DNA from: Macrostomum lignano
Taxonomy: Eukaryota
DNA length: 55,861 bases
Direction: 5' to 3'
NCBI GenBank assembly: GCA_002269645.1
Contig: NIVC01004192.1
Span: forward strand, 1-55,861
Positions 3,216 to 55,158 of this stretch are shown here, piece by piece. Each line of letters begins with the position of its first letter. Within the stretch, counting starts at the first letter, position 1. Both the position numbers and the translations under genes were made by a program. The notes under the pieces are model-generated. The model worked only from the letters and a program-made list of their open reading frames with translations. It made no database searches and was not told the origin of the DNA.

Positions 3216-5168
3216 CTGGCCTCCTGTCTGCCTGGGTGTAACAAGGCTTACCGATTGTTTTCAAACCAACTGCATATGCCTTAGACACTCTACTGACAAT
3301 TATGACACCATGTTATCCACTATAGCGCCTGTCGTGCCTGATTTTCACGATAGTTTTTTTTTCCGCTGCGAATTTTCTGACTCCCAGAAAGATCGCAATT
3401 TCCCGGTCATGCAAGAAATCCGCTCAGCAAAATGCATTTATTCGTGTCCTCCCTCCATTCTGAATCCCAGTTTTACTGAGCATTTAAGGAAATCTTCTCA
3501 GTTTCAAGCGCAGAGAGTAATCCCACGTCTCATCTCTACAAGGCACTGCATGCAATCCCCCTCTCTCTCACTCGCTCCCAACCAGCCTAGACTCTATAGA
3601 CCACTGGCAAGGGAGGAATGGTCGCAGCCTTAAGCGGTTAATTTTCGTTGCAGACAAAGTGGCTTAGGATGGCGGAGACAGTTGAAGAATTGTCTCAAAC
3701 GACTTTCTCTTGTCCCCCCCTCTCTCTCTCCTCTCGAGTTTCGGCCGAAACTCCTTCATCAGCCGATGCGAGGGATGTCATACAGGGCTAGTGAGGCGGA
3801 TAAGTGGACTTCGGAGATAATCGCCCTAAGAATCGCGCTCTGAGGCTGGGCATGGCGGTCTGGGAGGATAAAGAGGCGCCACCGCCGTTGACAACAAGAG
3901 AATCGATTGGGATTCCCCGCCTCAACCCTGCATGCAAAGCAAAGCAAAGCAAAGCTGCATGCACTTTGTTTTTGGCGGGGGTGGCGGGTGGTGGGTTAGC
4001 CATATCTTAAGACTCAAGGATTTCATCTCATTTTCTAGGGTATCAGGGCTTGTACAAGCATTGAGACTCTGCAACAGATTACGAATAGATATTGGCCTAT
4101 TGCATGTACGCTCGTAGTTGCTATGCTATGACTTAAAGGCTATGGGAACAGCCAACAATAGCTGTTGAGCATTATCAGTAACAATACTCGTACAATTTAT
4201 GCCTGAAAGGCTTGTTTTCCTAACGGAAAAGATGTCAATACTCGCACATGACAGGGAGCTTCGAAAGTGTTGGCTTAAATCATTTTTTAGTGCATTCGAC
4301 TCGTATAACAATTTATTTAATCGATAGCAGTAGAAATGAGACTTAATAATACTTTTAGTATTATTGATCGAAATTAATAAATGTTTAAAATGAAGGGACA
4401 ATTGTACAGGATTCCTTTATATTATTTATTTTTTGACGAGTTTTCCGGTTTTTTTATCTACAATGATTATTTTAATATTTATTTATTATACAGTATTTAA
4501 GTACCATAATACAATTATAACAGATTAATTTTTTTAAAATCCGTATTATTTACGGATATCTATTAAAATTAATTTATTTAATAAAAAACCCTCAAACGAA
4601 AAATTAAAAACTTTAAAAAATTACATGACTCCGATACAAACAACTGCGGCGCTACCGTGGAGAGAAAAATTATTGAATGACTGAATATTTGAGTTGCTGT
4701 TAAAACGCATTGACCTAGGCGGTCGCGGGTCAGCCCTTGGGGGGGCTCTGCCGCAATATATATATTTATAAAAAAATTTAAAACGAGCATTGTATTGTAA
4801 ATTAATTTTCGAAATAGTATTTTACTTAGTATAAAAGGTTTAAAGGTGTAAAACTGTTATTATTGAGTTTGAAAATAAAAGTAAAAGCATATTGGAATAA
4901 TTTTAGAAAATTTTTGCTCAAGGAAGGAGAATATTTGAGTTACTATTGAATTGAGTTAATGTTCCGTTATAAGAAAAAAAAGTAGAATTTTATTGATGAA
5001 GAAACACATTGATTGCAAATCTGAAGGCTTAGCTAGATATATTTTTATCTGTTAAGATTAAGACTAAGATAATATTTATAAAAATTAGTTCACGGTTGGC
5101 TGCCGTGTCTGAAGCTATTTAGCTGTGTGTTGTTAAGACATCTGGATTAGCAATCCTTTCTTATTCCT

Positions 5169-6293
5169 TCATCCATGGAAAAAATTGACAACAATTTTCT
5201 CTTTTAAGTGGCGGCAAAAAGATCTGAAAATGAAAACAAGAATAACGAACAAAACTTTGATTGTATACTCCGAAACCGAGGCACATGAAGCGGTGTTCTG
5301 AAATTGGCTTGAGCCACCATAGTCAACCGCAGCAATCCAGATGGCAATGGTGCAAATCACGGTACAGCAGACAGCAGCGAAGCATAGGCATGAAAACAAC
5401 GCGCTCAGAATGACGATGCCCACTTTTGATAGCATTAACAGACAGCAGTAGACGGTCAATAGAAGTGGATAAATCAAACAGCAAAACGCGGCGATAGAAA
5501 TGAGTATAAAAGCACTTTTACTAAGTTTCTTACCGAATAGCTTTGAGGACCAACTTTCTATTTTCGATTTTGCGAGTGCTTGTGTGTGCTCCGCTAAGGT
5601 CTTGAAATTGATCTCTAAATTGCACTGCACTTTTTTGTGAGCCATATTTAACTTGATCCGCAAATCGCACTGCACTTCTTTGTGAACCATCGCACTCATC
5701 TCGCCAGAAATAAACTTCACCAGGTACCGAGGGGCTGCCTGCTCAGCTCGGTACACAATGTACTCATCGTTGAGTACACCTCCGCTGCTCTTAGTCTTCC
5801 GTTTAGCAAACGCAGAGTCGCAGCCCTCAGCTTGCAGCCGTACAATGCTGAGCCTGGGATCGGCTGCTTTGCAAACCAACGGTTTTCCGATAGCAACATC
5901 GCATAACAGCAGGTACTTGGCTCCATTGTCGCGACAGTATTGAGCACTCTTGGTGCTATCGGTGGCGAAGTAGATTCCCGGACCGAACATGCCTCCACTA
6001 CCGACCTTGAATCCATCTTCGATAATTTTCTCGGCGTTTTGTTTCGTCGTCCCGTGAAAAAGCAGCTGCGGCTGGCGGTCGCTGGCGTGCAGTTCATTGA
6101 GACAGTTTCTCAGTTTGCGATCCAACTCGGAGTTTTGGATCCTCTCAATCGACTGGATCTGTATTCGGATTCCATGCTCCGGTTTGACATACCGCTCGAC
6201 TCTGTCCCGAACTGTCAGATACTCTTGAATTGTGTCGTCACTGGTCTCGGTGAGAAGTTTCCGGCGAACTACTCTGCCTTGTATCTGATCTGG
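5169..6293 (-). CDS. Tankyrase-like PARP/ADP-ribosyltransferase catalytic domain followed by ~3 hydrophobic TM segments (terminal exon; upstream exons unresolved)
   Basis: ORF 6125-5169 extends in frame to an acceptor TTTTTAG at 6294. Motifs IERIQN, LFHGT, GGMFGPGIYFA, LLLCDVAIGK, NDEYIVY..EQAAPRYLV match the tankyrase/PARP fold. Candidate AATAAA at 4994-4989. Confidence 0.9.
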   Translation of the reverse strand, partial: PDQIQGRVVRRKLLTETSDDTIQEYLTVRDRVERYVKPEHGIRIQIQSIERIQNSELDRKLRNCLNELHASDRQPQLLFHGTTKQNAEKIIEDGFKVGSGGMFGPGIYFATDSTKSAQYCRDNGAKYLLLCDVAIGKPLVCKAADPRLSIVRLQAEGCDSAFAKRKTKSSGGVLNDEYIVYRAEQAAPRYLVKFISGEMSAMVHKEVQCDLRIKLNMAHKKVQCNLEINFKTLAEHTQALAKSKIESWSSKLFGKKLSKSAFILISIAAFCCLIYPLLLTVYCCLLMLSKVGIVILSALFSCLCFAAVCCTVICTIAIWIAAVDYGGSSQFQNTASCASVSEYTIKVLFVILVFIFRSFCRHLKEKIVVNFFHG

Positions 6294-6794
6294 CTAAAAA
6301 GTATTATCAAAGAGAGATCTATGATTAAATTGACTCGGATTGAGACTTTAAGCTCTTCCACACAGCCATCAATTGAAGGCAATTGTAGAGCGATTGATTA
6401 CATTCATACTTCACACATAATCGCAGGAGCAGGCACCCTGGCGCAACGTCTTTGGCGACATCGTCCCACGTTGCACTATACCAGCGCTTTTGATAGGAGG
6501 CAGATCCAGTGTTGATCTTTTGATATGTTGTGCCTTTCTTATTGCTCCATCGATATTCATAAAGCTTTTCGTTCAGAAATAGTTTTAAAGGGAGGTTTCA
6601 CCGAAAAAAATACACTACGGAGATAGGAAATTTCACGATTTTCAACACTAAAACAGTGATTGGGTCTCTTAACAGTGTCAGAGAAAGTTCTAATCACACT
6701 ATTTTGTGCCTCACATGCTGCTCTGACGACGCATTAATCGATTTTTTATGTTAAATTGGTCTTATTGGAAAAAACGTTTAAAATAATGATAAGA

Positions 6795-6918
6795 ACTGAA
6801 GCAATGCAGAGAGTTAAGTGTCTTGCTCAAGGACACAAATTGTTCCCGTGGGGTCGAGAATCGAACCCCCGACCTTTCAGTCGTGAGCCCGACGCTCTGA
6901 CCGCTAGGCTACAACCCC
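6795..6918 (-). mobile_element. tRNA-derived CORE-type SINE fragment
   Basis: Minus strand has A box TAGCCTAGCGG, B box GGTTCGATTC, then TGTGTCCTTGAGCAAGACACTTAACTCTCT, resembling the MIR/CORE motif TGTGACCTTGGGCAAGTTACTTAACCTCTCT. Confidence 0.75.
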
Positions 6919-6964
6919 TCTATGCTAAACCCCCCTCTTTGGTGCAAAAGCCCTAAATGAATGT

Positions 6965-7040
6965 TGCCATGTACGGAATGAATCGAACCTGGGGTCGCAA
7001 TGCAAGAGTCAGACGCGTTTACCGCTGAGCTGCCCTGCCC
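6965..7040 (-). mobile_element. Second degenerate tRNA-like SINE head
   Basis: Minus strand GCAGCTCAGCGGTAAACGCG...CCAGGTTCGATTC (A-box-like and B-box-like); no full cloverleaf. Confidence 0.5.
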
Positions 7041-8721
7041 CTAATTTTAAATCTGTAAAGTACTTTTATTGCGTGCTTTGGGTAGCTATACGGATATTTG
7101 ATTTAATGCATGCACGCTCAAGTATTCACCTGACCGGCTGCATCATGCCAGCATTAAATTAATCCATTTCATAAGTTCACATACCTGGGATGCGGGTTGA
7201 TTACCCATGCCGCGATAAAAGTATTCGGACACTTAAATTAAACAAATATTTTGTTGATCATAACTAAAAACAATTAACCGATGGCTAAAGGTATACCTGT
7301 CTCTTTGATGAGTTAGTTCTTCTGCTTACAGTTTATGCAAGTTTTGTTTGGAGCTTGTGCCACAGATTTCCTGTCTTGACTAATAAAACTCTCTCGCAAT
7401 TATAGACTCAAAATTTGTAAAAAAATGTTATCAACTACACTACTTATATACTAAGAAGGTACAAGCCACTAGCCACTGATACTAGAATCGTTTCCCAGTG
7501 TACAACTTATGCATTTACCTTGCGTACTGTTTCTAAGTCTGTCTAGCTCTAATTGCACGTACGCATTCGTGCAATACAAGGCTACTTTTGTTCGTTGTTT
7601 TGTTCGCCTTTCATTCGTCATGTTATGTGGAACTTCAGTTTTGCTCCAAAGTAATTTGCAGCATCTTTTATGTAATTTTTGTCCTACAAGATTTTGGGTT
7701 GCTTGTCGTAGATAGACGGATTGGAAATCACAGACTTACAGAAGTCAATTTCAATCATATTTGATCGCAGCCAATGTTAAATTGGGCGGAAGTTTTCGTT
7801 CTCAAAGGAACTTAGAATTACAGCTAAATCTTGTGATATCATAAAAACTCATTTGACGGGGTGGTAGCAAAGAAAGGAATGAGAAATTTTGAATGAACTA
7901 AATGTAGAAATTTTTGTATATAGTTGCTACTGTTACTTTCTTACGGAAAAGGATGCTTTAAAGCAAAAAAATTATCGGCCCCTGACAGCTAGCTGGCAGC
8001 CACCCCAAAGATCATATGATCTAGCCCAAGATGTCAGCACCCCTTTGAGAAGTGAAATCTCAGCAATTCCCCCTTGAGCCATGCAAAGGCTACTAAAGTA
8101 GAAGGACGCAACACTCGAAATCTATGGAAAATGTTTTGAAGGCCACTTTTCCTAACCATGTCCTTTTTGAATGGATGGAGGGAGAGTGTTGGCTGAGGCA
8201 GTGCTGGCAGAGATTTAATCCGATGTGCAGACGATACGCTCTTATTTCCTAGAAGAAAGCAATTAAATAAGATGGCCTCTATTATAGGTACAGCAAATTT
8301 TATAAAGCTTATAGACTTTCATTTTGCGCTACTCATAGTAATAGAAGCAGAGCCCGAGTGCCTTTCGATGAGCAGCAGTGCTGGCTGAAGTAAGTGCGCA
8401 CTGTTTATGCTGCTATATGAGCGGAATGACAAATTGAGTAATGAGTCATGCTGCTCACCCTCGCTTCAACTACGAGTATGGCGAAGCGCTCGTGCCCCAG
8501 CCTCCTCTCCGGCTGGCTTTCGAATTAACAAAAATTTCTTTTGAGTTTTCGCCTGCACATCATGCGGGCGGGCCGCGCATTGTTTCTGCTACTAAAATGG
8601 AAATTACAGCAATTAACGATCCGGCAGAAGCAGTTGAGATGAAGAATGCGCGTAAGTGAACTCATTGAGTCCAAGATATTACTCAGGTACGCTTGTGCTG
8701 CAAATTTGACATGGCGTTCTC

Positions 8722-9142
<421 letters not shown>

Positions 9143-9668
9143 CACGGACAGGTGGAGGGCGAGAAGTAACCAAAGCCAACACAGCGGAATGCCGAACGGC
9201 CGCATGAATGGCACAGCTGGCTAGCATAAAGGCCTGTCCTCTCAAACAATAAACCGCTCCATCGGGGCAGGGGCGGGCGGGTCAGAGTGAAGTGTCATTT
9301 GCGGCCGCTGAAATGGAGCAGGCGGAGCGCGGCATCGAGCGAGAGAAGTGCGCGCTGCTAACCAAAGCCTCCCTTAGATTTTTGAAAGAAGGAAACCTCA
9401 GTGGGTCAGGGAAAGAGAAGATGGCAGTAGTTTGAGAGACTGAGTGGGCCAGGCGGTGTTAACCATGCAATAGAAATGCCTATACACTTACCCCTGAAGT
9501 TTTGTCTTATATTCTGGCAACAATCTCTTTTACACGGCCCCTCTAAGTGCGAGGGTCAGAATAAACCCGACCAGCTCGTTGAGCTCATCTGAGCACTAAT
9601 TCTTTTGATAAGGTCAGTCGGCCAGTCCCCGGATCTGCAGCAGCAGCAGCAGCAGCTTGCGTGACGCA

Positions 9669-12600
9669 ATGCAACTGGTGTGCAAGGTGGCCAGGGCCTT
9701 GGCCACCACAGCTCTGATAATCGCAATCCTTCCCTATGAGGCTCGAGCACAGGACGTCTCGCCAGGAGTGGCAGCCGGGGTGACCTTCGCCGTGACGTTT
9801 ATCGTCTGCGTATGCGTCTGCGTCATCCTCGTCTGCTACCTGCTGCGGCGAATGCGCCTGATGAAGAGGAGATGTGAGAGCTGGCTGCAAGGGCTTCGGG
9901 AGGAGTGGCATTAGCGGAGAGCATGAGGGGGAGATGGAGAGCATGAGGGGGAGAGGGAGAGCATGAGGGGGAGATAGAGAGCATGAGGGGGAGATGGAGA
10001 GCATGAGGGGGAGAGGGAGAGCATGAGGGGGAGATAGAGAGCATGAGGGGAGATGGAGAGCATGAGGGGGAGAGGGAGAGCATGAGGGGGAGAGGGAGAG
10101 CATGAGGGGGAGATGGAGAGCATGAGGGGGAGTGGGAGAGCATGAGGGGGAGATGGAGAGCATGAGGGGAAGAGGGAGAGCATGAGGGGGAGAGGGAGAG
10201 CATGAGGGGGAGATAGAGAGCATGAGGGGGAGAGGGAGAGCATGAGGGGGAGATGGAGAGCATGAGGGGGAGAGGGAAAGCATGAGGGGAGAGGGAGAGC
10301 ATGAGGGGGAGATGGAGAGCATGAGGGGGAGATAGAGAGCATGAGGGGGAGAGGGAGAACATGAGGGGAGATGGAGAGCATGAGGGGGAGAGGGAAAGCA
10401 TGAGGGGGAGAGGGAGAGCATGAGGGGGAGATGGAGAGCATGAGGGGGAGATAGAGAGCATGAGGGGGAGAGGGAGAACATGAGGGGGAGATGGAGAGCA
10501 TGAGGGGGAGATGGAGAGCATGAGGGGGAGATGGAGAGCATGAGGGGGAGAGGGAGAGCATGAGGGGGAGAGGGAGAGCATGAGGGGGAGATGGAGAGCA
10601 TGAGGGGGAGAGGGAAAGCATGAGGGGGAGAGGGAGAGCATGAGGGGGAGATGGAGAGCATGAGGGGGAGATAGAGAGCATGAGGGGGAGAGGGAGAACA
10701 TGAGGGGGAGATGGAGAGCATGAGGGGGAGATGGAGAGCATGAGGGGGAGATGGAGAGCATGAGAGGGAGAGGGAGAGCATGAGGGGGAGAGGGAGAGCA
10801 TGAGGGGAGATGGAGAGCATGAGGGGGAGATGGAGAGCATGAGGGGGAGAGGGAGAAGAGCATGAGAGGGTAGAGGGACAGGGATACAGTTCACTTTAAC
10901 CTAGTCCCTTTGTCGTCGCACCCTCCTTGGACAGCGAGCTCACACAGGTCCCGGTCCGGCGTCGAGAACACCGGCTTTGATTGGGTGGAGAACCGGCCCG
11001 CAACCACCGGTCGCCGAGCTGAGCAGAGCGGCGGCGCCTCAGTGCGGATGGTCAACGAGCAGGATTCTGCCAAAGTGGTGAGCCAGCCCACAGATTATCC
11101 TGTGAGCCAACCTGTGTTTCACCTGGTTCCCGGTGTTCACCTGATTCCCGGTGTTCACCTGGTTCCTGGTGTTCACCTGATTCCCGGTGTTCACCTGATT
11201 CCCGGTGTTCATCTGGTTCCCGGTGTTCACCTGATTCCCGGTGTTCACCTGGTTCCCGGTGTTCACCTGGTTCCCGGTGTTCACCTGGTTCCCGGTGTTC
11301 ACCTGGTTCCCGGTGTTCACCTGGTTCCTGGTGTTCACCTGATTCCCGGTGTTCACCTGATTCCCGGTGTTCACCTGGTTCCCGGTGTTCACCTGATTCC
11401 CGGTGTTCACCTGGTTCCCGGTGTTCACCTGGTTCCCAGTGTTCAGCTGTTCACTATCAAACCATTGTCTTCATCAACAACTTCAGCATGTCAACAAGCC
11501 AAAGCCGGAGGTCAAGGATCTAATATCAGTTTGCGCCACCAAGCTTGAGGACTTGGAATTAAAGATTAAGCTGAGCAACAACATGGTCCTGGTGTCCAAG
11601 GACCCCGCGCACAGCTCGCTCTGCAGTCGGCAAGGCGTTCGAGCAGGTAATTTCGTTGTCCTGATGTCAACCCCAACCCCAACCCCAACCCCAACCCCAA
11701 CCCCAACCCCAACCCCAACCCCAACCCCAACCCCAACCCCAACCCCAACCCCAACCCCAACCCCAACCCCAACCCCAACCTCAACCCTAACCCCAACCTA
11801 AATCCTAACAATTCCCTTGCTAACGAATGCCGGCCTCTCCACTGCCTTAGGCGACCGCATCGTGGCGATCCGGGTCGACCTAACAGCTGGCGAAGCGGCC
11901 GACGCGGTCGACCCCGATCATGTGAGCTTCCTGCTCGGCCTGGCCGGTTGCTACGGCCTCACAGTAGAATTCCAGCACCAGCAGCCAGCGACTTCAGCCG
12001 CCGCCGCCGCCGCCGCCGCCCCGCCGCTGCCGCCGTCAACACCGTTGCGCGAGGCCTCGCGAAGCGTCGCCCTACCATCGATCGTTGTCTCCGAGGAGGC
12101 GCCGGCGCCTGCGCCTACAGGAGGGCCGCGGCTTCTGCTGGCCCGCGGCGGCGGAGTCCCGCAGGCGGCAGCTGGTGGCCAACTCGAGCGGGCCCTGCTG
12201 AACTCCGACTGGACGGAGGCGGAGCCACAGGAAGACGAATGGGTGGCACTGTCGGTGGATCTGATGCTGAAAGAGGAGGCCGACTCGCACGCCTACGCTG
12301 TCATTGGCGAGGTGGCGGTCCCGAACCTCGACTTGTCGCTGGAACCCGGAGACGAAGGCAAAACCTGGCGCTCGTTGGGTGGCGCCGTTGAAGACGCGCT
12401 GACCGAGTCCACAGGCAGGCGCGGCTCCGCCTCGTCAGGTGGCACCTCGTCAGGCACGGCGAACACCCTGGTGGAGATGCCGCGGCCGCGCAGCGACGAC
12501 AGCCTGTCAGCGTCCGGGGATGACGATCTGGACGAGGCCGACCTAGTGGTTCAGGCTGTTAGGAATGCCGACAAAGCGTTGTCGAATGCGGAATCCGCGG

Positions 12601-17649: not shown

Positions 17650-26322
<8,673 letters not shown>

Positions 26323-26944
26323 TTGTGTGGTCTTTTGTATGACTGAACTTAACGAAAGATAAAAAAACAAACTAGCCTGCGAAGCAACAATTGACTATGC
26401 ACTAGTTTTGCAATATGCAGGCACAAAACAACAAAAATTAAAGCTCAAGTGGCCAGTGAACAAAACTTTTAACTTGACTACATCAGCGATGAAAATTAAA
26501 AATCAAAAGAGGAAATCGTGACTAAAGAACAGAATGTATTTATTAAGCAATAAAAAGAAATACTCAACCCTTGTTTTGAAGTGCTTTTCTAAATTTCTTT
26601 CTAGGTTTTCCTGATATAAATAAGCAAGTAGGATTTGTTTTACTTATTGTTTCAAACTAACGGGTTTACCAGTTTACACGTGTAATTGCCACAGAAAGTT
26701 ACTTACCTACCCATGATATTTTACTTTTGGCCACTGCTATCTGTTAAAAAAGTAGCTGATAAGGTCGCTAGTTTGTTTATGAGACATTTAACATTGCCTT
26801 TCAGATTCACCCAAAGATTAACTTCAGCGCAAATGTTTTTTCTCCTAATTACATAGGGCAAAACGAACGATTGAGTTGCACCGATTTTTTAAACAGAAAT
26901 GCTCGAATCTGCATTCTGTGTATATTCTGTGCCCATATTCTGTG

Positions 26945-27992
26945 CCCAAAGGTGCTCCGTGCGTACAACGTGCAAGAGCAGCTGAGTTCCGCCATCATGA
27001 CAATGTACCGTGAAACGAAAGCTGCTGTTTCAACACTGGACGACTTATCGGACTTCTTTGAGACTTCAGGGAGATACGCTTGCGCCGTTCCTGTTCGTTC
27101 TGGTGCTTGTCTGGGTGCTGCGGACCGCTCTTTCTACTAACGACGACGGCTTTCTGTTGCGGCGACGCGTGGGTCGACGTCAACTGGAGAGGCGACTCAG
27201 CGTGCTTGGCTACGCCCACGATCTTGCCCTGCTGTCCTCAACTCTCGAGGGCGCCCAACGACAACTAGACAAGCTAGTTTTTGTTGCGGCGAGTGTCGGC
27301 CTGGTGGTCAACACGCAGAAAACCGTCGTGCTCTGCGTGCCGGACGACATCGAGACTGCGATTTTGTGCCAATGCGCTAGCTGATGGGTAAGCGACAGGG
27401 CTTCCGCGCTGTCATCAGTTCGTCTAAATTGGCGGTCTGGTTTTGCGGCGTCGCCGCGGGCTTGCCTGGGCTGCCTTTCGTTCTGTGAGGGCTGTCGTTC
27501 CAGGCGGTGATTGAGACCGTCCTGCTGTACAACGCCGAGACCTGGACGCTGACATATTCGCTCGAGCAACAAGTTGCGCGGCGCATGCTGGCCTGCTGCG
27601 CGCCGCCTTCAAGATCGGCTACGAGCGAGTGAACGACGTGGATTTGTATCACCGCGCCGGCCTGGTCCGTCCAAGCGACTTGTTGCGTTGTCGACTCCAG
27701 CTAGCAGGCCACATCATCCGCGCCGAGACGTACTACCCACAGACGGTGCAGGAGGTGCTCTCTCTCTCTCGGCAGGCGGCTGGGGGCTTGGCCGGCCGAG
27801 AGGTCGGCCCACCACCTGGAGGAAGCGGCAGATCCCCCTGCGTCGTTGAGATCGCACTGCCTGCTTGCTGACGCCGGCGCCCCGGATTCAGCCGGCGGCG
27901 TGGCGTTCGTTCGTGACCTGGCCCTGAGGCGCGCCCTGTGACGCTGAACGCGTATTTTGTTGTTGCTGTTGTTGTTGTTTTTGTTGCTGTTT
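26945..27992 (+). mobile_element. 5'-truncated, decayed non-LTR retrotransposon (RTE-like LINE) RT fragment with short-repeat tail
   Basis: LQGDTLAPFLFVLV, LGYAHDLAL (YADD-like), GLVVNTQKT, IETVLLYNAETWTL, RLQLAGHIIR across shifted frames; (GTT/GCT)n tail at 27956-27992. Confidence 0.85.
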
Positions 27993-28732
27993 TAAGATGA
28001 CGCAAAGCAATGCGATACAAAATGCGATGTAACATTTTGTTAGCGCATAATTTTTTAAAGCATTGAGATCGAGCACCACCTTAGCCTCTACGGTTTTAGT
28101 GAGCAATTTTTTTGAACAGGATTTTGGATACATGGAAACCTTTATTCCTTTACGATTAAAGTCAAACGCTAAACGCTTTTATAATCGTAATCTCGGAGTG
28201 TACTAGTATAATATACGAGTACTATATGCATCGTGCCAAGTAGAATTAGATAGCAGTCTTAGCAGTCTGCTTGTTACGTGCATGGCTAACAACACTTCCC
28301 CTTGCGAAGCTTCGATGAAATGCCTTTGTTTCCCGGTGCATGAAACTGGTTTAAAGTTTACAGGTCTTTGCCTTATACCGATTGTAACATTAATATTTCC
28401 GCATAGAAACATTGCTGTGAAACTATCGAGCAAGCTAAACTAGTCCGGGTTGCTCCTCATTTTATTGGACGCAGCACCAATGCTTTATTATAATAATATT
28501 CGATATAATATATGCCTACCTAATACATTTGTAATAATGCAGGATTCTGCAGATGCGATGCAATAAAACGCCGGTATAGGCCCCTTCCCTCCCTCATCTT
28601 GCAGCAATAATTTTTGCTTTATAGATATTCGGTTAGCGAATTTCGAGTAAAATGCGTCTGCGCTTTTACGGCTTGTATAAATCTACACACATGATATAGC
28701 AACAGGGCCTTCAAACAGCAATTTTAATATGA

Positions 28733-29069
28733 GACAGTGGCAACCACCGAGAGACAGTGGCAACCACCGAGAGACAGTGGCAACCACCGAGAGACAGTGG
28801 CAACCACCGAGAGACAGTGACGACCACCAAGAGACAGTGGCAACCACCAAGAGACAGTGGCAACCACCAAGAGACAGTGGCGACCACCAAGAGACAGTGG
28901 CGACTACCGAGAGACAGTGGCGACCACCAAGAGACAGTGGCGACCACCAAGAGACAGTGGCAACCACCGAGAGACAGTGGCAACCACCGAGAGACAGTGG
29001 CGACCACCAAGAGACAGTGGCGACCACCGAGAGACAGTGGCAACCACCAAGAGACAGTGGCGACCACCA
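28733..29069. repeat. 20-bp minisatellite GAGACAGTGGC(A/G)ACCACC(G/A)A, ~17 copies
   Basis: Direct reading. Confidence 0.95.
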
Positions 29070-29814
29070 AAATAATTGGGCGCTGGGTTCGCGCGAAAAA
29101 TACGCTACGGAGATAGGTAAGAACTTCTTTTCTGGCGCAGAAATAGTGATAGATTTCTATTGGAAGACAGATCAAATACTCGTCTTTTAGAAAAGCATGC
29201 CGAGCTGTCTTATTGCCCCATTGATTTTTGTAAAGATTCGAGTATATTTAAAAAAGTACGATATTTAAATTCCATCAACCCAGAAACTGTCTAAACTGAC
29301 AACAAAGTTGCATTTTATGCTGTAAATTCTGAAGCTCAATTTTCCCTCCAACTTTGACAGCACAATTTCTCTTAAGTAGTATAACACGAGCCTTTACAAG
29401 CTCGAAAACAAGCTGCTCTTGAAAGCAGTTAAGCCAATTTATTCCAATCGATGCTTACACACTTGCAGCCTAATTCCACTCTAATCCTTCAGCTGGGACA
29501 TTGAAAAGCTTTCAAAGAGATTCTATAGTCCAGCATTATTCCCGCGTTTCTTAACTAGAACCGAACTCTGACCTGAAAGCACAATTATAGTCTTAAGCTC
29601 ATATCGTGATGTGCAGTAAACAAATGAAAAATCTGTAAGCCTAGTTATAGCATAACATTTTAAGTGAGCCTTAATTGATAAATTTGTACAATATTCGAGT
29701 GCATAATTTTTTTTCTAACACAAACGACTTCTGCTGTTTATTTATTGGTTTTTATTGGTTTAAGTTCACTAGTTTAAAACGAATTTAAGAGCACCAATGT
29801 AAACAACAGTTTAA

Positions 29815-33235: not shown

Positions 33236-55158
<21,923 letters not shown>

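Follow-up and report, generated by a model that had tools for sequence, protein, structure and literature searches.

Does the flatworm Macrostomum lignano encode an ADP-ribosyltransferase of the H-Y-E class that is held in a membrane by its own C-terminus? The question is raised by a minus-strand gene on contig NIVC01004192.1 (assembly GCA_002269645.1), analysed here as a single stretch of 55,861 nt (55.9 kb; hereafter the window), in which the catalytic domain of a poly(ADP-ribose) polymerase (PARP) runs on without a stop codon into a cysteine-rich hydrophobic tail. The reading that we favour with moderate confidence, based on sequence comparison and a structural model, is that of a lineage-specific, membrane-anchored ADP-ribosyltransferase with a cytosol-facing catalytic domain, its membrane insertion, topology and activity being predictions. 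An earlier note, made from the letters of the locus alone, had proposed much of this architecture, and its claims are taken up below with the results that bear on them. Residues are numbered from codon 1 of exon 2, and all features are listed in Table 1.

The exon-2 protein matches the Pfam profile PF00644 for the PARP catalytic (ADP-ribosyltransferase, ART) domain at 103.5 bits (E=1.4e-29; curated cut-off 26.7 bits), covering positions 2–197 of the 199 in the profile, and carries the motifs FHGT, GIYFA and NDEYIVY. Relatives were collected from 5.8 billion sequences, and an alignment of the exon-2 protein with 13 of them (A1, 14 sequences) was used to build an AlphaFold2 (AF2) model. H80, G81, Y108, S116 and E177 are invariant in this alignment and match the corresponding motifs of TNKS2. 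The D-loop is short, the predicted NAD+ site is complete (His, Gly, Tyr, Ser, Tyr, Glu) and model confidence (pLDDT) exceeds 90 over the catalytic core. By sequence and predicted fold, the protein belongs to the PARP/ARTD superfamily and to its H-Y-E class; the intact triad and PARP fold described in the earlier note are thus confirmed by the profile match and the invariant residues.

The position of this domain among characterised PARPs is less specific than had been thought. PARP4 (2.1e-10, the top match) and TNKS2 (4.1e-10) lead the PDB sequence matches, followed by PARP2, PARP1 and PARP3 at about 1e-6, while Foldseek on the AF2 model retrieved TNKS1, PARP4, PARP1 and PARP2 at E values of about 1e-14 to 1e-15 (probability 1.00 for TNKS1, PARP4 and PARP1) with no clear winner, tankyrase leading by a small margin. 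The label "tankyrase-like" given at first sight therefore holds in so far as the tankyrase matches are strong, but PARP4 equals them by sequence and PARP4, PARP1 and PARP2 do so by fold; tankyrase/PARP4-like H-Y-E ART domain is, on these sequence and fold comparisons, the better label. Tankyrases 1 and 2 (PARP5a/b) have in common with the window protein the H-Y-E triad, the GGMFGxGIYFA segment, the lack of a helical regulatory domain before the ART domain and a short acceptor loop, but identity is about 25–30% and the window protein is without the zinc-binding insert, the ankyrin region (ARC) and the SAM domain. Absence of the insert, already remarked on in the earlier note, is borne out by the HMMER alignment to TNKS2, in which the insert region is a gap or poorly aligned and the query reads RDNGAKYLLLCDV. 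Pfam searches of the exon and tblastn of the window detected no ankyrin, SAM, WGR or regulatory helical domain. Tankyrases are soluble proteins. PARP4 (vault PARP) likewise has the H-Y-E triad, but its BRCT, VIT, vWA and MVP-binding regions are absent from the window protein.

The same comparison bears on the reaction product. The association of H-Y-E with poly(ADP-ribose) synthesis made in the earlier note does not carry over, as the triad is needed but insufficient for polymer synthesis, and PARP3 and PARP4 retain it yet are mono-transferases (PMC9189837). With PARP4 as close to the window protein as tankyrase, polymer synthesis is not inferable from the triad.

The domain lies in an exon that requires another upstream. 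The exon-2 frame is shut upstream by an in-frame TAG (6296–6294) that doubles as the AG of a tttttag acceptor, in the acceptor-like context ctctctttgataatacttttTAG/CCA, and because its first in-frame ATG is codon 102 (GGMFG), inside the catalytic domain and past the catalytic His, an upstream start exon is needed. A candidate reads gcggcATG...CAG/GTATGT, with a favourable context for initiation and, in frame with the acceptor at 6293, a canonical phase-0 donor; its ATGGGNAAY start is the single occurrence of this pattern in the window, both strands counted. We propose from these signals a two-exon minus-strand gene, 7208..7185 plus 6293..5169, with a putative first exon and a product of about 382 amino acids. 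The earlier note missed that a start exon is needed. Two short M. lignano paralogues, designated P0005 and P0022, begin with a very small exon 1 that encodes an MG start; a single intron follows, and all the rest, down to the stop codon, lies in one large exon 2. Checked against the annotated proteins, exon 1 of P0005 is MGNCYSKRRST/GTAAAA, followed by a 96-nt intron, and that of P0022 is MGNHVAIPDPAYDTCTLP/GTAAGA, followed by a 447-nt intron. The predicted start MGNQPASQ (G2, A6) fits the PROSITE N-myristoylation pattern, as do the starts of P0005, P0022 and a further paralogue, P0006. When all M. lignano paralogues were compared with the window by tblastn, the catalytic exon alone was found, with no coiled-coil or Cys-motif N-terminal exons. 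GC content is 0.47–0.54 across the first 590 nt of exon 2, 0.39–0.49 across the remainder and 0.19–0.42, mostly 0.19–0.33, in the 3′ flank.

Table 1. Features of the window, with the PARP gene first and its neighbours after it (TM, transmembrane; KD, Kyte–Doolittle hydropathy; dGapp, apparent insertion free energy on the Hessa scale; SINE, short interspersed nuclear element)
Feature	Position (nt)	Strand	Details or basis
Proposed exon 1, coding part	7208..7185	-	ATG GGT AAT CAA CCC GCA TCC CAG = MGNQPASQ
Proposed intron 1, 891 nt, GT...tttttAG	6294..7184	-	Donor and acceptor read from sequence
Two tandem tRNA-like SINE heads inside proposed intron 1	6849-6918, ~6985-7040	-	Rfam tRNA, below gathering threshold
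Exon 2	6293..5169	-	374-codon open frame plus stop codon 5171-5169
PARP catalytic (ART) domain, residues 23-194	5712..6227	-	Pfam PF00644
Catalytic triad codons	His80 6056-6054, Tyr108 5972-5970, Glu177 5765-5763	-	Alignment A1
Tail, 178 codons	5705..5172	-	Polar helix, two hydrophobic helices, polar loop, last helix
Polar helical linker, ~residues 197-252	5538..5705	-	AF2 helix 204-252
45-nt in-frame tandem duplication, MVHKEVQCDLRIKLN / MAHKKVQCNLEINFK	5602..5690	-	Repeat search
Hydrophobic helix 1, residues 260-289, SAFILISIAAFCCLIYPLLLTVYCCLLMLS, TM-grade	5427..5516	-	KD up to 2.5; dGapp down to -1.97
Hydrophobic helix 2, residues 291-323, VGIVILSALFSCLCFAAVCCTVICTIAIWIAAV, TM-grade	5325..5423	-	dGapp down to -2.87
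Third hydrophobic stretch, residues 345-357, VLFVILVFIF, and basic C-terminus RSFCRHLKEKIVVNFFHG	5172..5261	-	AF2 helix 334-373
AATAAA, candidate poly(A) signal	4989..4994	-	~175 nt past the stop codon; predicted from sequence
100-codon open frame	9612-9911	+	Signal-like start, Cys/Val-rich hydrophobic stretch TFAVTFIVCVCVCVILVCYLL, basic RRMRLMKRR
Isolated PDZ-domain exon	26062-26394	-	Pfam PF00595 E=3.7e-5; NHERF-like by eye
Reverse-transcriptase fragment	27001-27381	+	Pfam RVT_1 E=1e-6, just below cut-off
Nicotinic acetylcholine receptor alpha-type subunit exons	48755-49213, 51196-51699, ~54566-55069	+	Pfam

The tail follows the catalytic domain in the same frame. Its AF2 model consists of helices at residues 204–252, 259–287, 292–325 and 334–373, the second and third of which are hydrophobic, parted by Ser-Lys alone, and followed by a polar loop of about 20 residues. 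Graded in 19-residue windows on the Hessa dGapp scale, with KD hydropathy alongside, negative values are confined to residues 260–289 and 291–323, so that the tail offers two robust TM candidates and one marginal one: the 13 residues at 345–357 reach KD values of 1.6–1.95 with dGapp not under 0.5. The model suggests that hydrophobic helices 1 and 2 probably form a hairpin, and nine of the 13 cysteines of the tail lie within them. The polar linker begins with a motif, M..K.VQC[DE], that is common to P0022, and contains a tandem duplication whose copies (5602–5645 and 5647–5690) are 82% identical at 45-nt spacing, in frame and equivalent to 15 residues. Much of this had been anticipated in the earlier note, which placed a hydrophobic Cys-rich tail in the same exon-like block as the catalytic domain, as the 374 codons without a stop confirm, and saw a 15-residue duplication that proves to be real at the DNA level; of its "about three segments", two are TM-grade on the Hessa scale and the third is short and does not pass.

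We asked whether the tail could be open by chance, using dinucleotide-preserving shuffles for openness and, for periodicity and TM content, 400 shuffles that were themselves stop-free. The tail frame holds no stop codon where eight are expected and is open in 0.015% of shuffles (P ~1.5e-4), the remaining five frames of the region hold 4–14 stops, and GC3 exceeds GC1 and GC2 (p=0.014). As T-rich non-coding DNA, when translated, yields hydrophobic peptides with many cysteines, the hydrophobic segment was tested separately. By itself it is open in 1% of shuffles; its codon positions differ in base composition with a chi-square of 19.9, whereas stop-free shuffles average 6.4 and reach 19.9 in 0.75% of cases (p ~0.0075), and two TM-grade windows occur in 0.75% of the 400 stop-free, composition-matched shuffles. 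Openness, periodicity and TM-window statistics together indicate that the segment behaves like sequence coding for membrane helices and not like an accidental intron or untranslated region. The tail is thus unlikely to be open by chance; its statistics are coding-like, and suggest that it is translated. An origin of the tail from (GTCT)n/(AGAC)n microsatellites was considered and rejected (4-mer enrichment p=0.08; best match 10/16).

The wider family places this gene in a group of flatworm paralogues. The nearest proteins are seven M. lignano clusters, six of which (P0001–P0006) are 54–59% identical to the exon-2 protein (E ~1e-57 to 1e-66) and the seventh, P0022, 44%. Short environmental or protist proteins come after them (P0007 and P0008, 37–44%), P0023–P0025, one of them from Prymnesium polylepis, were detected by profile only, and bacterial WGR-PARPs come next. 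The M. lignano relatives have in common with the window protein 44–59% identity over the catalytic domain, a short D-loop and a short acceptor region, but neither paired TM-grade helices rich in Cys nor the 45-nt duplication occurs in any of them. Their genes are arranged in tandem, one locus (L001) having four or more PARP-domain copies within 20 kb, and the family is annotated merely as "Poly [ADP-ribose] polymerase". Minisatellites and dispersed repeats of the window are common to M. lignano PARP loci at 72–85% identity, and a 20-nt satellite, GAGACAGTGGCAACCACCAA, at window positions 28731–29070 belongs to the same family (~80–82% identity) as one at 19885–20138 of locus L003, where it fills the intron of P0022.

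P0022 (BOX15_Mlig006965g3) is the paralogue that bears most directly on the tail. It extends 51 residues beyond the domain, RSSRSTGVMLDKAVQCEGVATSLPGLITLIVDLVLDIMRSFRKRKKTKRS, and the ends of this extension resemble both ends of the tail, with M..K.VQC[DE] first and a hydrophobic stretch, RSF and basic residues last (IMRSFRKRKKTK). In position-anchored shuffle tests between the two, the initial residues of the extension scored p ~0.002, its final residues ~0.004 and an end-to-end alignment with gaps 0.007. BLASTP of the tail against that of P0022 was not significant, and since only the anchored shuffles are suggestive we regard shared descent of the tail ends as a pointer and not as a result. 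The comparison is suggestive of a short C-terminal extension that predates this gene within the subfamily, and such an extension may then have been lengthened here, both through the 45-nt duplication and through a gain of about 100 residues, the hairpin among them. P0022 itself has no catalytic His-Gly, SFYTT replacing LFHGT.

The N-termini of the family point towards membranes as well. P0005 starts with MGNCYSK, P0006 with MGLFHSK and P0022 with MGNHVAI, which are of the myristoylation or dual-acylation type (loci L001 10001–10786 and L003 19122–20354). Such MG starts, present in three paralogues that look soluble, hint that attachment to membranes may recur in the family, by differing means.

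Several observations weigh against a translated, membrane-inserted tail. T-rich non-coding DNA in the window also gives long hydrophobic open frames, such as a run of 85–92 codons in the 3′ flank, and six of the seven paralogue clusters stop 1–19 codons past the domain end ...RYL(V/I)xF and are without such a tail. The null BLASTP comparison with P0022 counts on the same side, as does the rejection of a tail anchor in P0022, where the hydrophobic stretch contains two Asp, has a dGapp of +6.5 and is not TM-grade. A full HMMER scan of 1.84 billion representative proteins found no homologue of the tail; its sole borderline match, a "VWIAAV" match to a bacterial repeat protein (P0015), was judged spurious. 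Similarly, when the tail was searched by tblastn in three M. lignano loci, E values exceeded 1 and nothing tail-like followed the PARP copies, the window holds no further copies, and no Pfam family, CYSTM and known Cys-rich TM modules included, matches at its curated cut-off. An orphan tail and nearest relatives that are Macrostomum-only paralogues do uphold the lineage specificity suggested in the earlier note.

Two features of the tail itself also count against membrane insertion, as they would allow the hydrophobic segment to be removed as an intron of 310 nt (5533..5224) that is open by chance, leaving an enzyme that is soluble or only lipid-anchored. One is a canonical donor inside the tail, TCG/GTAAGA (5534/5533), with the same intronic hexamer as CCG/GTAAGA of P0022; the other is a strong polypyrimidine acceptor, ttcgttattcttgttttcattttcag/A (...ttttcattttcag/A), with its AG at 5225–5224. 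With 38% T and 20% A, the segment resembles the P0005 intron in composition, its length falls within the family intron range of 96–891 nt, and the spliced product would end in ...SSKLF-DLFAAT and a stop codon, resembling the short-tailed P0022. We nevertheless consider such removal unlikely as the sole fate of the transcript, given the in-frame openness of the segment (P ~0.01), the periodicity and the clustering of TM-grade windows above stop-free shuffles (p ~0.0075 each) and a GC content above that of proposed intron 1 or the flank. Moreover, splicing would shift the P0022-like C-terminus (RSF, then basic) out of frame, and introns within exon 2 are absent from the paralogues. It is possible that the spliced form coexists as an alternative isoform.

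A second explanation regards the gene as a paralogue that is young or in decay: either it lost its ancestral stop codon, the tail being unselected read-through with little or no translation, or the whole copy is an unexpressed duplicate. The orphan status of the tail fits this, as does membership of a large, tandemly duplicated and fast-evolving family in which P0022 is already without its His-Gly motif. Changes between the two 45-nt duplication copies, which are mostly non-synonymous, speak for decay and against the favoured reading, and the gene lies in a satellite-rich region, about 43% of the window being tandem repeats. Decay seems improbable to us, however, for a gene with 374 codons free of stops and frameshifts, all family-invariant residues retained, and a start exon, acceptor and AATAAA plausibly in place; stop-free read-through of 178 codons has a P of ~1.5e-4, and the periodicity of the tail is coding-like. 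An assembly or chimeric artefact that fuses a PARP exon to unrelated sequence is conceivable in so repeat-rich a region, which is difficult to assemble, but is highly improbable, as the junction lies in unique sequence, no window repeat matches the tail, the frame is unbroken and the residues straight after the domain match the P0022 extension.

For the membrane-anchored enzyme that we favour, the predicted order of parts is a myristoylation-type start (MGNQPAS), a stand-alone PARP domain, a linker of about 50 residues with the duplication, the Cys-rich hairpin, a shorter hydrophobic helix and a basic C-terminus. We posit that the C-terminal hairpin would keep the enzyme at the plasma membrane or an internal membrane, on the cytosolic side, probably assisted by N-terminal myristoylation and perhaps by palmitoylation of juxtamembrane cysteines. 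So anchored, it would draw on NAD+ to modify itself and neighbouring proteins at the membrane by ADP-ribosylation. A part in stress, immune or toxin-like signalling, as proposed in the earlier note, is speculation. Macrostomum is a model for regeneration and ageing in which RNAi and transgenesis are available.

To our knowledge, the characterised H-Y-E PARPs are all soluble, nuclear or cytosolic, and PARP16, the one known membrane PARP, is an H-Y-Y mono-transferase. Against this background a bolder reading can be framed, in which an orphan or de novo Cys-rich TM hairpin makes the product an integral-membrane poly(ADP-ribose) polymerase, the first membrane-embedded enzyme to synthesise the polymer, within a fast-diversifying, flatworm-specific PARP arsenal that uses differing membrane routes (N-myristoyl or palmitoyl starts, short tails and TM hairpins). 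We regard this as doubtful. If the tail is translated and inserted, the gene would place an H-Y-E class PARP at the membrane and would be a clean case of a new membrane anchor acquired through an orphan C-terminal extension in a fast-expanding, lineage-specific family.

The nearest functional parallel differs in most details. PARP16 (ARTD15) is small as well, is anchored to a membrane at its C-terminus and has a catalytic domain that faces the cytosol (PMC4245714, PMC9189837), but it belongs to clade 6, has an H-Y-Y triad and an N-terminal helical domain, and is tail-anchored in the endoplasmic reticulum by a single terminal TM segment, whereas the window protein has Glu177 as the third residue of the triad and two TM-grade helices (260–323) followed by about 50 residues with a basic tail. 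The contrast with PARP16 drawn in the earlier note, a single tail anchor and H-Y-Y, agrees with both papers (PMC9189837, PMC4245714). PARP16 was not among the 60 best PDB sequence matches.

Combinations of PARP and TM segments have been seen sporadically, in clade-3 proteins of a sponge (N-terminal TM) and of Rhizaria and in clade-2 proteins of rice (C-terminal TM) (PMC4245714), and this type of architecture is therefore not unprecedented. These proteins resemble the window protein in the lineage-specific accretion of a TM segment to a PARP (PMC4245714) but fall into different PARP clades, in which H-Y-E is mostly lacking, and their TM segments are unrelated and single. As far as the tools used show, the searches made gave no precedent for a protein of an expanded, flatworm-specific family that joins an H-Y-E domain to an orphan hairpin rich in Cys and probably has an N-myristoyl start; a literature search for Macrostomum together with PARP found nothing relevant. 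The significance is limited in that PARP and TM segments have been joined several times and this gene may be a single-species novelty.

Smaller elements lie in and around the gene. The tRNA-like element in proposed intron 1 scores 25.6 bits with the Rfam tRNA model, under the gathering threshold, and Rfam and tRNA scans gave no match at that threshold. The stretch GAGCAAGACACTTAAC after the first of the tandem elements (6849–6918) resembles the core of CORE-type SINEs. The repeats of the window comprise dozens of distinct minisatellites with periods of 10–102 nt, repeat-rich examples being 22583–25456, 33394–35751 and 19571–21771, and two long (AGAC)n tracts of 2.4 kb and 0.9 kb; local strand skews are extreme.

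Among the neighbouring features, the open frame at 9612–9911 adjoins a 20-mer satellite and may be a small membrane-protein exon, with RRMRLMKRR resembling a stop-transfer sequence, or a repeat artefact. The reverse-transcriptase fragment has YAHD in place of YADD and is probably part of a decayed non-LTR retrotransposon. The nicotinic acetylcholine receptor exons match Pfam Neur_chan_LBD (E=7.6e-23) and Neur_chan_memb (E=6e-8), carry the Cys-loop and the YDCC loop-C motif, are split by satellite-filled introns and have their top database match in M. lignano, at 79% identity.

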